Assembly: GCF_001194135.2 (NCBI RefSeq)
Contig: NC_068987.1
Location: 6,899,154-6,963,153 of the forward strand
From: Octopus bimaculoides
Lineage: Eukaryota
DNA length: 64,000 nucleotides
Direction of reading: 5' to 3'
The notes beneath the pieces were generated by a model, which worked only from the letters and a program-made list of their open reading frames with translations, ran no database searches and was not told where the DNA came from. Shown here in pieces: positions 21,993 through 58,379 of the stretch. Each line of letters begins with the position of its first letter. The stretch's first letter is position 1. The position numbers were made by a program, and so were the translations under genes.

Positions 21993-22114
21993 GCGTTGGT
22001 AGCTGAGACTTTGATATTAGCGAAAACCCATGGCTACGCGGATAAGATTGAAAATGAGTTGGAAGAAGAATTGCGTCGTGACAGTAAGGGGCCCCCAAAA
22101 GAAATTTCGGCGAG
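21993..22114 (+). CDS. Hv3: Hv-family proton channel (Hv3-like), first identified coding exon (cytoplasmic N-terminus)
   Basis: Acceptor tctacag|GCG, donor CGAG|gtaagt. 122 nt, open throughout (ALVAETLILAKTHGYADKIENELEEELRRDSKGPPKEISA-R). Ends in phase 2, matching the next exon. No Met, so an upstream exon is required. Confidence 0.85.
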
Positions 22115-24614
22115 GTAAGTGTTCATTTAGGCATAATTAGCATTTTATGTGGTATTAGTTTCAAATGAACATCGAATATAAAGGGACTCTTTGCAGGTAG
22201 CATGAATTTGCTAATGTGGAAAATATCTACTATATCAATGCAGAATAATTGTTGGCTTAAAAAAAATATTTTAATGCAAACTGGTATTTGAAACTCCAAG
22301 AGTAAATTGCGTTTATAAATCAGATGATTTCTGACACGAATTTAGAAACGATAACCTTCTTCGTTTCGGGAAGGGAAACCGTTAATGGATTCTTCATTTC
22401 CCTTTCTCTTGCATTTTTAATAATAGGAGAACCCTGTTTTTATTGATATATGATTTATATAAAAACACACATAATAGGTACGAGATAATAGGTACGAGTG
22501 ATAGACATAAAGGTAAAATAAATGAAATATAGAAGGACAAAAAGAAGAAAGTGTAAAAAATGCTTTAGTTAGAGCAATAATATCAGGTGCCTGCCTGTAT
22601 ATTTGGCTCTAACTGGGTGATGCTGGTGTTTCCCAAGTTTCAAAGTGGGTACGTTTCAATATGTCTGCATTTTGTTATTATCTATGATGTAAAGTATGTA
22701 TGCGATATTGTTTCCGTAGTCCACGAGAGATACTTCTTTTATTTTTCTCTATTGTATAAAGATCATAACTTTCATTCCAAACCTTACGAAATTGCAATTA
22801 TGTTATATATTACCTTGGCATACACATCATGCTTAATCGAAGGAGAGATGCCTGACAACAATTATGGACGAGTTATTCACCTTGACGGTGAATAATGTGC
22901 ATCTTTGTATCATGTACAATTCGGTATTTCTTATAATAATTATCAAGTATGGCACTAAATATAAATATAAATATATATATAAGTTAGTTTAAATAAATAT
23001 GTAATGTACATATATAAATTCATACGTAGTTACACGTATGCATACATACACATAGACAGACAGACACAGGCGAACAAATAGACATATGTTTGTGAAAGGA
23101 TATATATATATATATATGTGTGTGTGTGTGTGTGTGTGTAAATACATGTGATTGTGTGTTTATATGTGTTTGTGTGTGTTAATGTTTTTATATGCATACA
23201 AATACACGCACACAAAATTGTTTTCCGGTAATAACAGTTTTCTCCGAACTCATGGATTATTTTCCTCCTTACATCTAAGAAAGAGAATCTTTTCCAAACC
23301 GTTATGGGCTATAAAATACCCATGGAAGAAAATGCCTTAAGATACCTATGGAAGACAAGAAAACATCTCTTAATTTCAATTTATTTGCATAAATTTAACT
23401 AATTTTCATTTTTGCACAACCTCTCACCTGCTTTGATAGAATGTTTCTTTCAAATATATATTTTCACATAGCAATGGTTTCAGCAAACCGAAATATCCTT
23501 ATGTAATATATATATATATATATATATATATAGATGTATGTGTGTGTGTGTGTGTGTTTGTGTGTATTCATATGGATGATTTTATAAAGACACATACTAT
23601 GTTAAACTATGTTTTTCGTGTAGTATAACGATTTCGAACAATGAAATGTTCCTAATTGATGAACAAAGTACGTAGTGAAACTTAATGCATTACACTATAT
23701 TCCTTTCACCATGCCGTTCTTTAGAGGTCTCAGCTTCATTTTTCTACGTCTTCGCCTGAGAAAGTGCTTTCACCTGAGTAGAATCGAATACCGTTTTATT
23801 ACTAGAAGTGACGTTTTCTATCTTAAACAATTTTCTTTTGATAATCCCAGAAGTATCACGTAAGAAAAATATGTAGACAAATGTCTAAAATATGTCGACA
23901 GATGTATTCTCTATAATGAAAAGTTTATAAACGTCTGTGGTCATAAGCCTATGTACGTGTGAGTTTCTTTTACCGTGTTTACTATTCTATACTAAGCCTG
24001 TCAGAGTTTAGTGATAACGAGGAGACGGAAGAGGATATGTATTGATTGATACATTAATCTAATTAAGTAGTAAAAGGAAGGAAATCGATAAAAACTCTTC
24101 AGAGTTACTTTGGTTTGTTGTGAACAATAGAATTCAAATTCGTCTTGCGTGTTTATCATATCAATCACCACTAATACATCTAATTGCTATGCTCAAGAGA
24201 TGATTCTTTAGTGGTACCTAAATACCGTTGCGTATAATTTTCCATAAATAATTTCATTTACAAATATATGTATAAACCATGCAGGCAGTTGGTCTGTATT
24301 TTATTGTTCAAATATGACTATTTACATTTTAGTGTCATCTATTTTAGCTATATCCATTTATCAAATTTAAAACCTAAAATATTACTTATGACTACTTTTA
24401 GCAATTCAAGTTTTATTTTAGTTAAATATCTTTATCGTATCGAAATATCTATATATCCCACTTCGTGTAAATGTGTTATTATTATTCCAATGAAATCATA
24501 TTGTGTCCGAGAGGCGTTCTTCTTAAACGTCATAAAATAACTTATAAACAGATGCTTACATTGTTTTTGCCGCCTTTTAAAATTAAACCATACTTTATTA
24601 TTTGTAACAGTAAG

Positions 24615-24823
24615 GCGGTGAGCTGGAAGAGTAGTTAGTGCGCCGGACAAAATGTTTTAGCGGAATTTCGCACATGCTTATGTTCTGGGAGCAAGTCCTG
24701 CTGGGGTCCACCTATCCTTTCGGGGGTCGATTAAAATAAGTACCAGTCGAGTAATGGAGCCAATGTTTTCGAATTACCCCCCACCTACGAACGTGTTGGG
24801 TTTGAGACAAAATTTAAAATCAA
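24615..24823 (+). mobile_element. Diverged SINE copy
   Basis: GGCGGTGAGCTGG head and ATCCTTTCGGGGGTCGATTAAAATAAGTACCAG core. Confidence 0.75.
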
Positions 24824-55815: not shown

Positions 55816-55931
55816 GTCTTGTAGTAGCTGTCAAAGATCACGAACACTTTCGCCTCAAACTAGTGTACAGTCGTAAAAAGAAAATTTTAGCCGTATTAAA
55901 ACAAAAAGAATTAAAATTAGATTTATTCCAA
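55816..55931 (+). CDS. Hv3: Hv3-like exon: S4 C-terminal extension and start of coiled coil
   Basis: tttttcag|GT...CAA|gtaagt, 116 nt (phase 1 to 0). SLVVAVKDHEHFRLKLVYSRKKKILAVLKQKELKLDLFQ. Confidence 0.93.
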
Positions 55932-58288
55932 GTAAGTTGATAAATGTTAACTTCCTTTAAATGGCGCAGTTCACTCCCAATCCTGTATTTCGGCATATAT
56001 ATATATATANNNNNNNNNNNNNNNNNNNNNNNNNNNNNNNNNNNNNNNNNNNNNNNNNNNNNNNNNNNNNNNNNNNNNNNNNNNNNNNNNNNNNNNNNNN
56101 NNNNNNNNNNNNNNNNNNNNNNNNNNNNNNNNNNNNNNNNNNNNNNNNNNNNNNNNNNNNNNNNNNNNNNNNNNNNNNNNNNNNNNNNNNNNNNNNNNNN
56201 NNNNNNNNNNNNNNNNNNNNNNNNNNNNNNNNNNNNNNNNNNNNNNNNNNNNNNNNNNNNNNNNNNNNNNNNNNNNNNNNNNNNNNNNNNNNNNNNNNNN
56301 NNNNNNNNNNNNNNNNNNNNNNNNNNNNNNNNNNNNNNNNNNNNNNNNNNNNNNNNNNNNNNNNNNNNNNNNNNNNNNNNNNNNNNNNNNNNNNNNNNNN
56401 NNNNNNNNNNNNNNNNNNNNNNNNNNNNNNNNNNNNNNNNNNNNNNNNNNNNNNNNNNNNNNNNNNNNATATATATATATATATATATATATATATATAT
56501 ATATATACACACACACACACACATATATATTTATATATGTATATCTATATATAAATGTGTGTGAGAGTGTATATAGGTGTGTGTGTAAGTACGTGTGCGT
56601 ATCACTGTGTTTGTGTGTTTGCATGTGTGAGTTAAACAGAGGTAGCACATATGATGAATTGGTTAAGTGGTTGAAACATTTGAGAAAATATTGAAGACGC
56701 GGCAGTTTATGTACTGGTATGCGATGCTACTGTCACAAGTGCCTTGCATTAGACTACCTTAGAGGTATTTGGAGATTAGAGATAACTTCAATGAATTTAT
56801 TTGGATAATATTGGTAACAAGTCAGGAAATTGTGAGGAGGAAAAATCCTCTTAATGTTGTGGTACTTCTGCAATTTTTTGAAATGCAAGCTAATGCAACT
56901 GAATTATTTTACCAACCACGGAATTGGCTATGAACCAGAATAGGTTTTTGGTAAGTATATATATATATAAATCAGTTTTTAGCGTCCGTGTGTATCATTT
57001 AGAGAAAGAATTAAAGAGAACACTACACTGCACCAAACACATTACATTGCACCTAATACATCTAAATAAACGAAGAGTGTGCTGACAAGGCGCCAACTCC
57101 ATGAAATTAATAAAATTAGGTAGGTGTGAACGAAAGTAAAAACTTCGAAATTTCTTGCGATTATAACTCTAAATAAAAGGAATTTGTGAAACTGTATGCA
57201 ATATGCAAGTTGCCCTATTGCTTAAGGACTTTTCTGCTAAGGTCATATTTTCCTCAGCGAAGTATCTTATTGTTCTTAGGAACGCAAGATTATTCTTGCG
57301 ATTTCTATTCGTCTGCTTCTTTATCTGAATTTTCAAAAATGCTCGTATGTTATAAAAATATAAGTTGTACCAACAAAAAGTGCATTTGAAATCAAAACCA
57401 TAATAGAGGCAATTAAAAGATGATGAATTTCTTTANNNNNNNNNNNNNNNNNNNNNNNNNNNNNNNNNNNNNNNNNNNNNNNNNNNNNNNNNNNNNNNNN
57501 NNNNNNNNNNNNNNNNNNNNNNNNNNNNNNNNNNNNNNNNNNATGTGTGTGTGTGTGTGCGTGTGTGTGTGTGTGTGTGTGTGTGTGTGTGTGTGTGTGT
57601 GTGTGCGCGTGTACAGAATCCTACAAAAGTTTATTCATTTTAATTATGAAGCTTGTTAACACGTTTAACAAAAGCTGAACGTCACGCAATTTTTCCACAT
57701 ATTTATAAATGCAGTAGCCACACTTATTAAAATGTGTCCGTAATTGACAATGCTGATATTAGTAGATTTTTTTTAATGACATATTCTTTTGTGTGAGAAA
57801 ATAGTTTGCTAACTAGATATGAAGTAAATCAATAAATGAAATGATTCTGAAAAAGAAAACATTGTATATATTCATAACATTTTGTTTATAAACATGCCAG
57901 TAAATGTTGTCTAAGCTAATGATGAAAAAAGGAAAGCTTCTAATGATGAATAAAAAAATAAAAAAAGAAGTGTAATGCTCTTCTGTTCTCATTGGTCTTC
58001 CATAAAGTTTCGAAGAACGAAATACAAATTTATAATTTAGTTTTGGTAGTTATATGATGTGACTGTTTAGCATTGTAATATAACTTCTTAAAAACGATAA
58101 TCGGTGTAGTCTGATTACGACTTCATGATAAGTTGCCTGCGGTATTCTTTTACTGAATAACCATTGACTAAAAACACACGATACCATGAACAAACTGTTT
58201 GTGATATATATTGAATGGATCATAAATAAATATTTTCTCAGAAACAAACATTTTAATACTTATTTTCTCTTTTGTTTTATAATTTTAG

Positions 58289-58379
58289 ACTCAAATTGAT
58301 AGTTTACGAAAATTATGTGTATCACATGGAATAACTGACAGTCAAATTAACCAGTGCCTCTATCAAGAAGAACCAAAAG
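58289..58379 (+). CDS. Hv3: Hv3-like exon: distal coiled coil
   Basis: ttttag|ACT...AAAG|gtaggt, 91 nt (phase 0 to 1). TQIDSLRKLCVSHGITDSQINQCLYQEEPK resembles the end of the Hv coiled coil (human IERLNKLLRQHG). Confidence 0.88.

Follow-up and report, generated by a model that had tools for sequence, protein, structure and literature searches.

A stretch of 64,000 nucleotides from Octopus bimaculoides (NCBI RefSeq assembly GCF_001194135.2, contig NC_068987.1, forward-strand positions 6,899,154 to 6,963,153), referred to below as the window, carries LOC106869300, a gene that is annotated already but has no name. Judged from its sequence, the product of LOC106869300 is a member of the unconventional Hv3-type proton channel family of lophotrochozoans, a family already published, and within it a paralogue of Aplysia AcHv3 in a sister or paralogous subfamily (clade A), not an orthologue of AcHv3. 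We regard the identity of the gene and its family membership as practically certain. As an overall explanation we favour, with moderate confidence, a clade A Hv3-type gene whose voltage-sensor domain (VSD) would conduct, perhaps as a weakly voltage-dependent leak. The original prediction for this DNA, which had proposed a cephalopod orthologue of AcHv3 acting as a constitutive proton leak, was, on a comparison of sequences, right at the level of the family and wrong on strict orthology, and its function was inferred.

In RefSeq, the product is labelled "uncharacterized protein" (XP_014770462.1 / XP_052825150.1, isoform X1, 436 aa). XP_014770462.1 corresponds to P0011 in our search set, and residue numbers here follow P0011. 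P0011 ranked first among 418 relatives when 1.84 billion representative proteins were searched exhaustively with HMMER; a word-indexed homology search had missed it. When P0011 was compared with the window by tblastn, nine blocks were obtained, each 100% identical, and the nine spliced exons (5496-58627) translated into residues 1-360 of P0011 with zero mismatches. Internal exons were bounded by an AG acceptor and a GT donor throughout, the donors being mostly gtaagt. The last 76 residues (VEPKSS…SQSRP) lay outside the window, and the alternative C-terminal tails of the O. sinensis isoforms were not found in the window. P0011 is annotated on the chromosome-level assembly GCA_001194135.2 as well, where the gene spans ~115 kb. 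The seven in-frame exons originally proposed between 21993 and 58379 were confirmed, with their boundaries and AG/GT sites, as exons 2-8 of LOC106869300, and the sizes given for them, 54-323 nt, are those of exon 5 (54 nt) and exon 4 (323 nt). The extent of the gene had to be revised at both ends: translation begins with the start codon at 5496, which lies 16.5 kb before 21993, and exon 8, correctly recognised as an exon, is not the end of the gene, the coding sequence (CDS) running on into exon 9 and into exons beyond the window.

All nine exons lie on the forward strand. Exon 1 (5496..5558) supplies the start codon and MSSPIPPGDRKNSAIRVSAIR, as established by tblastn, exact CDS reconstruction and the isoform sequences. 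A 15-nt tandem repeat at 5530-5565 (AGGGTAAGTGCAATA / AGGGTAAGTG…) provides donors at 5543 and 5558, and these tandem donors produce isoforms X2 and X1, respectively, which differ by VSAIR. Exon 2 (21993..22114, 122 nt) encodes a conserved cytoplasmic N-terminal helix, ALVAETLILAKTHGYADKIENELEEELRRDSKGPPKEISA, and exon 3 (42747..42871, 125 nt) encodes S1 with Asp87 and the external acids Glu94 and Asp98 (E119 and D123 of human Hv1). The extracellular S1-S2 loop and the first half of S2 are contained in exon 4 (50295..50617, 323 nt), and exon 5 (53499..53552, 54 nt; TLLKMICFGTRFFKGKLE) follows with the second half of S2 and the S2-S3 linker, its Lys215 corresponding to K157. Exon 6 (55417..55555, 139 nt) carries S3, with Asp232 (D174) and Asp243 (D185), and S4. 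The S4 extension and the start of the coiled coil, (S)LVVAVKDHEHFRLKLVYSRKKKILAVLKQKELKLDLFQ, are encoded by exon 7 (55816..55931, 116 nt), and the end of the coiled coil, TQIDSLRKLCVSHGITDSQINQCLYQEEPK, by exon 8 (58289..58379, 91 nt), which has a phase-1 donor and no stop codon. Exon 9 (58580..58627) is a 48-nt cassette exon (EYGNIICAVVSRRRLS): isoforms X1 and X2 include it, whereas isoform X3 and transcript-like contigs from Logan skip it.

The Logan contigs, from SRR29271455 and SRR29271462, were 1.6-2.0 kb long and carried an uninterrupted open reading frame (ORF) 82% identical to P0011; we take them to be transcripts because they are intron-less. The ORF of this cephalopod orthologue was colinear with the octopus model over every junction of exons 1-8, which gives these junctions independent support. 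Comparison of the window CDS with the Logan contig gave a proportion of non-synonymous differences (pN) of 0.046 and of synonymous differences (pS) of 0.55 in the region from S2 to the coiled coil, pS being higher elsewhere; from 0.046 in the transmembrane core, non-synonymous differences rose to 0.20 in the loop. The octopus gene is thus under strong purifying selection relative to this orthologue. Owing to the saturation at synonymous sites, no more than five of the eight exons were picked up when the Logan transcript was compared with the window by blastn. Near-identical orthologues were present in O. sinensis (LOC115214246), O. vulgaris and Argonauta hians, and several loop residues of the O. 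sinensis orthologue differ from those of the O. bimaculoides protein, with which the window agrees at these positions.

Published criteria for an Hv candidate are four transmembrane (TM) segments, an acidic residue in S1, a Trp in S4 and at least two basic residues (PMC10911540), and P0011 has four TM segments, Asp87, W268, and R269 with R272. The unconventional Hv3 family, which is large in molluscs, is described by xPWRxxR, a very large S1-S2 loop and large intracellular domains (PMC10377628). P0011 carries LPWRVIR at 55525-55545 and a loop of 97 residues, compared with 7-16 in typical conventional Hv1 and a family median of 128; its N-terminus of ~73 residues and its C-terminus of ~160 residues after N275 are larger than those of Hv1 and far smaller than the 535-residue C-terminus of AcHv3. 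Nearly all of its top relatives have [LVIM]PWRxxR and S1-S2 loops of 66-584 residues. Neighbour-joining (NJ) trees were built from 88 full-length relatives and human Hv1 over 186 core columns, with 200 bootstrap replicates (100 for family-level groups). The xPW family, with the octopus gene inside it, received 83% bootstrap and conventional Hv1 94%, and a group with the Lingula genes that NCBI calls TMEM266 (LOC106155662) stood apart with 99%.

The protein architecture agreed with this placement. In the AlphaFold2 (AF2) model of P0011, built from a 140-sequence alignment (mean pLDDT 74; TM helices 87-96), helices were predicted for the N-terminal region (10-52), S1 (74-123, reaching into the loop), S2 (189-219) and S3 (227-252), and S4 and the coiled coil formed a single unbroken helix (255-326) followed by a disordered tail. 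Four TM segments and no pore domain were present, with nothing hydrophobic past S4, so that the AF2 helices and the human Hv1 alignment bear out the originally described S1-S4 plus coiled coil. A phmmer search of all PDB chain sequences returned human Hv1 (5OQK, 8.7e-11) and a mouse Hv1 chimera (3WKV, 4.6e-9), with Ci-VSP at 0.48. Fold matches of the AF2 model had VSDs on top and were weak, the best PDB match of the whole model in Foldseek being the VSD of Ci-VSP (E 0.07), because long helices dominate. TMEM266/HVRP1 (C15orf27) resembles P0011 in having a VSD, a coiled coil and a long tail, and possibly in a non-conducting role; it has Val at the D112 position with a full S4 Arg repeat and is non-conducting (PMC4969798), whereas the octopus protein has Asp87 there, lacks R1 and shares 30% core identity with it. 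Unlike VSP/TPTE, the octopus tail has a coiled coil instead of a phosphatase/C2 Pfam domain, and the S1 acid and S4 Trp are present. The earlier placement in the Hv family rather than with TMEM266 or VSP was therefore upheld by the Hv1 structures at the top of the search, the retained Asp87 and the separate TMEM266-like group.

We then considered individual residues, pairing octopus and human Hv1 positions from the phmmer alignment, which was ungapped across S2-S4. The codon at 42820-42822 is GAC, within …VILCVLDCALVLGELILDL…, and encodes Asp87, aligned with D112 as had been proposed. Positions 55525-55554 read TTA CCC TGG AGA GTT ATT CGT GTA GTG AAC and encode L-P-W-R-V-I-R-V-V-N (Leu266-Asn275). 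The S4 reading of the original prediction, with W, R2, R3 and N kept and R1 replaced by Leu followed by Pro (TTA CCC, 55525-55530), was accordingly reproduced: L266 pairs with R205, P267 with L206, W268 with W207, R269 with R208, R272 with R211 and N275 with N214. In the remaining segments, D87 pairs with D112, H198 (50576-50578, exon 4) with H140, L208 with F150, G211 (50615-50617, exon 4) with E153, K215 with K157, D232 with D174 and D243 with D185. Conventional Hv1 (human HVCN1) thus shares the fold and D112, W207, R208, R211, N214, D174, D185, H140, E119 and D123, and its coiled coil likewise starts straight after S4, with an equal length from S4 to the coiled-coil end. It differs in having RxWRxxR with R1, Phe150, Glu153 and an S1-S2 loop of ~10-16 residues, at a core identity of 31%.

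Beyond S4, the cytoplasmic extension KDHEHFRLKLVYSRKKK is unchanged from Octopus to Lottia and Tegillarca, and the first 22 residues of exon 7 are identical in Lottia and Tegillarca. The extension encoded at 55816-55890, LVVAVKDHEHFRLKLVYSRKKK, does not vary between Octopus, Lottia and Tegillarca, is more conserved than the TM helices and ends in a polybasic run; it may serve as a binding or lipid-interaction site.

The function of the octopus protein was approached through AcHv3 (LOC101855857, XP_005094274.1; Chaves et al., FEBS J 2023, PMC10911540), the only recorded member of the family. AcHv1-3 were cloned from Aplysia, and AcHv3 carries LPWRxxR for RxWRxxR and gives a proton-selective leak current with weak voltage dependence (PMC10911540); the original prediction's account of it (three Aplysia Hv genes, the first S4 Arg lost, a weakly voltage-dependent leak) matches that paper. 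Both proteins have a pore-less S1-S4 with a coiled coil, the S1 Asp, the S4 core LPWRVIRVVNS with Leu at R1 and Pro before Trp, the D174 and D185 equivalents, and, within a large extracellular S1-S2 loop, an RxK/RR site of the furin type. AcHv3 (980 aa) differs in its 299-residue loop (97 in octopus), its 535-residue C-terminus (~160 in octopus) and its 35-residue N-terminus, which has no LVAETL helix (PMC10911540), and also in having Glu at the Glu153 position, where octopus has Gly. All cephalopod orthologues (O. bimaculoides, O. sinensis, O. vulgaris, Argonauta and Logan) have Gly there, in LVAGT[LI]LK, a residue unique to them, and most other family members have Glu, AcHv3 included.

In the mechanism we propose, each VSD would form a conduction path, as in Hv1, and the subunits would probably dimerise via the coiled coil. 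Asp87 in S1, paired with Arg269 or Arg272 in S4, would serve as the proton selectivity filter. Because R1 is Leu, Pro precedes Trp and the Glu153 position is Gly, S4 would carry less charge and the closed state would be destabilised, being short of two stabilising interactions. Such a channel would be expected to respond only weakly to voltage and to conduct at resting potentials, giving a proton leak that resembles that of AcHv3 or exceeds it. That the octopus protein itself conducts protons with weak voltage dependence is a tentative proposal, to which we give slightly less than even confidence, and to call it a "constitutive proton leak" would be an extrapolation from AcHv3.

Neutral mutants of Glu153 shift the threshold to more negative voltages, by up to >100 mV (PMC4969798), and Gly211 of cephalopods could therefore bias the channel open; it could also abolish current, so that this residue cuts both ways. 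Several points weigh against the favoured explanation. The Ciona Hv1 mutants E201G and E201A, equivalent to changes at Glu153, gave no current (PMC4969798), and the charge-transfer Phe150 is Leu208 in octopus. Currents of the octopus protein or of any clade A member were not found in the Hv3 papers examined, and some molluscan Hv proteins carry intracellular targeting motifs (PMC10377628). A Pfam search, Ion_trans included, found no domain in P0011 at E<=0.01, which probably explains the "uncharacterized" label. AcHv3, at 49% core identity, belongs to a different clade (clade B), the two clades grouped together in only 30% of replicates, and the tree is an NJ tree on 186 columns, a method of limited power for alignments this short, not a maximum-likelihood tree.

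Some of these residues would also suit a non-conducting voltage sensor whose coiled coil, N-terminal helix and tail let it serve, in a voltage-dependent or constitutive manner, as a regulatory or scaffolding subunit in the way of TMEM266/HVRP1. Gly at the Glu153 countercharge in every cephalopod orthologue, together with the currentless Ciona mutants, the change of Phe150 to Leu and the loss of R1, would be in keeping with such a role; the most conserved stretch is the cytoplasmic S4 extension, suggesting a binding partner, and TMEM266 offers a precedent for a non-conducting Hv-like VSD with a coiled coil (PMC4969798). However, the S1 Asp, Trp, R2, R3, N4, D174 and D185 are all kept under strong purifying selection, AcHv3 conducts with the same S4, and the octopus gene lies apart from the well-supported TMEM266-like group. 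We consider a purely regulatory protein somewhat unlikely, and conduction by a clade A Hv3-type VSD remains the explanation that we prefer.

The trees further distinguished the octopus gene from AcHv3. Cephalopod genes were united in 100% of replicates and joined clade A in 94% (200 replicates), and clade B, which contains AcHv3 (XP_005094274), Haliotis rufescens LOC124146915, Patella vulgata and Babylonia, was itself recovered in 100%; cephalopods grouped with clade B in 0 of 200 replicates, and orthology to AcHv3 is consequently disfavoured. Clade A comprises genes of Haliotis rubra (LOC124270375), Patella caerulea, Gigantopelta, Littorina, Mya, oysters, mussels and scallops, and the octopus core is 67% identical to that of Haliotis clade A and 49% identical to that of AcHv3. 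Because Babylonia and the genera Haliotis and Patella have one gene in each clade, the split between clades A and B predates gastropods. Of the 17 sequences that carried the N-terminal helix motif LVAETLxLAKTHG…, 16 belonged to clade A or to cephalopods, and AcHv3 lacked the motif; its distribution marks it as a clade A signature. No cephalopod clade B gene turned up in the homology searches.

The genes that group with the octopus gene as its true orthologues, among them Haliotis rubra LOC124270375, Patella caerulea SNE40_003451, Gigantopelta LOC121382048 and Mytilus edulis XP_071182173, share with it the helix AIRxLVAETLxLAKTHGYxxKIExELEEEL, DCALVLGELxLDL in S1, S4 with the KDHEHFRLKLVYSRKKK extension, an RxK/RR-bearing loop of ~100-160 residues and an overall size of ~440-460 aa. 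They differ in retaining the S2 Glu (E-T-x-L-K), where cephalopods have Gly. In other molluscs, clade A genes are annotated as "uncharacterized" or auto-named Hv1. A one-to-one orthologue of AcHv3 with the same constitutive proton leak might be supposed from S4 and its extension, which are nearly identical in the two proteins (FLLPWRVIRVVNSLV), and from AcHv3 being nearer than any other characterised protein (E 2.8e-45, 47% identity) and nearer than LOC106881396, a second octopus gene of the xPWR type. Such orthology is quite improbable given the bootstrap values above, the clade split that predates gastropods, the lack of the clade A helix motif in AcHv3 and its retention of Glu, in contrast to the cephalopod Gly, at the Glu153 position. 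The view that the exons reflect a pseudogene, a fault of assembly or ORFs chained by chance, to which 11 N gaps, short scattered exons and the absence of a Pfam domain might point, is rejected as having virtually no likelihood, the CDS matching the RefSeq protein exactly and being annotated on the chromosome-level assembly too, colinear orthologues occurring in a further four cephalopod sources, transcript-like contigs free of introns among them, pN lying far below pS, and every gap being intronic or downstream of exon 9.

The S1-S2 loop of the octopus protein contains the N-glycosylation sequons N152 and N157, and just past both of them, in a stretch that AF2 predicts to be disordered, RSRR163-166 (50471-50482, exon 4) followed by Ala. 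Across the family, R-x-[KR]-R was present in the loops of 48 of the 84 xPW-family representatives, compared with 3.3 expected from composition-preserving shuffles, at a median position 69% along the loop and ~38 residues before S2, with mostly Ala or Ser at P1'. Its density per 1000 residues was 4.65 in loops and 0.75 in cytoplasmic tails. This pattern suggests proteolytic processing of the Hv3-type ectodomain by furin-type proprotein convertases. If cleaved, the mature protein would be a two-chain voltage sensor, with the N-terminal helix and S1 in one chain and S2-S4 and the coiled coil in the other. Neither furin nor convertases are mentioned in the Hv3 papers PMC10911540 and PMC10377628, and a wider literature search gave no match; a likely ectodomain proteolytic site common to the Hv3-type family is thus not discussed in the Hv3 literature searched.

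A search with AcHv3 as query revealed LOC106881396 (XP_014787259.1, P0283, 576 aa, ILLPWRVIRIVNS), the second O. bimaculoides xPWR gene, located outside the window. It resembles LOC106869300 in its xPWR-type S4 and large S1-S2 loop and differs as a distant paralogue (~31-38% identity) with DATCVIGQ in S1 and the S2 Glu kept, in a clade with oyster and Nucella genes. Four putative Hv genes have been reported for Octopus bimaculoides (PMC10377628), and the supplement of that paper lists the mRNAs XM_014933788, XM_014930220, XM_014931773 and XM_014930385. Subtracting 144,514 from XM_014931773 gives XP_014787259, and the same offset takes XP_014770462 to ~XM_014914976, which is not among the four. 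By this accession arithmetic, LOC106881396 would be one of the four genes and LOC106869300 apparently would not; LOC106869300 may be a fifth Hv gene of the octopus that was overlooked in that census, and the published list is probably incomplete. A bolder reading, in which the octopus protein is a voltage-independent, always-open background H+ pathway through loss of R1 and of the Glu153 countercharge, exists in a furin-cut two-chain form and is possibly the product of a fifth Hv gene, appears to us unlikely.

The Hv3-type family was recognised only in 2022-2023, has AcHv3 as its sole recorded member, and as a whole is left unnamed by RefSeq and Pfam. Within it, the octopus gene offers a compact, 436-residue "minimal" representative of an uncharacterised sister subfamily. 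The cephalopod lineage, in which R1 is Leu, Pro stands before Trp and Glu153 is Gly, amounts to a natural experiment that bears on the charges holding the Hv closed state. Nothing in this result overturns current understanding.

Several other exon models were considered and rejected. An 86-nt exon starting at acceptor 53467 and joined directly to S1 (AFYIWLYIYLQTLLK…) was discarded, as P0011 and all orthologues use the 323-nt and 54-nt exons. This acceptor lies 32 nt 5' of exon 5 and is used in an old model, P0158 (UPI0006954A77); the resulting form inserts 11 residues (AFYIWLYIYLQ) into S2, disrupting the family-wide S2 spacing, and the exon is probably a mis-prediction. A C-terminal exon at 59174-59256 (KIYSLEIDNS…), guessed from weak similarity to Lottia and Tegillarca tails, occurs in no annotated isoform, and the ATG at 22030 (MATRIRLK…) opens a reading frame other than that of S1. 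Scanning the S1-S2 intron for splice sites and ORFs gave no credible hidden loop exons, and a tblastn search of the window with a human Hv1 query matched S1 and S3-S4 only. At 63215..63225 on the forward strand, …EEPK-GDG-stop follows the acceptor ttcctgaag; this segment, located by pattern match only, is probably the alternative terminal coding segment of isoform X4.

The window as a whole is AT-rich (33% GC) and contains 11 N gaps. One lies in intron 2 (38025-38173), one in intron 3 (46069-46172), one in intron 4 (52309-52523) and two in intron 7 (56010-56468 and 57436-57542); intron 1 holds four of the remainder, and the other two are found downstream of exon 9. No gap edge comes nearer than 79 nt to an exon, and because residues 1-360 all come from sequenced bases, no gap conceals or frame-shifts the isoform X1 CDS. 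In translation, the flanks of the gaps inspected (e.g. 8620-8867, 10358-10424, 56010-56468 and 62646-62819) look like short tandem repeats, of TA/CA type or other, with YIYIYI or CVCVCV in the ORF listings. The gaps probably mark simple repeats that were left unresolved, not lost unique sequence. Within intron 2, an ORF on the reverse strand (33468-33848) weakly resembles the helix-turn-helix of Tc1/Tc3 transposases (PF01498, E 7.7e-5, below the gathering score) and is probably a decayed mariner-type element.

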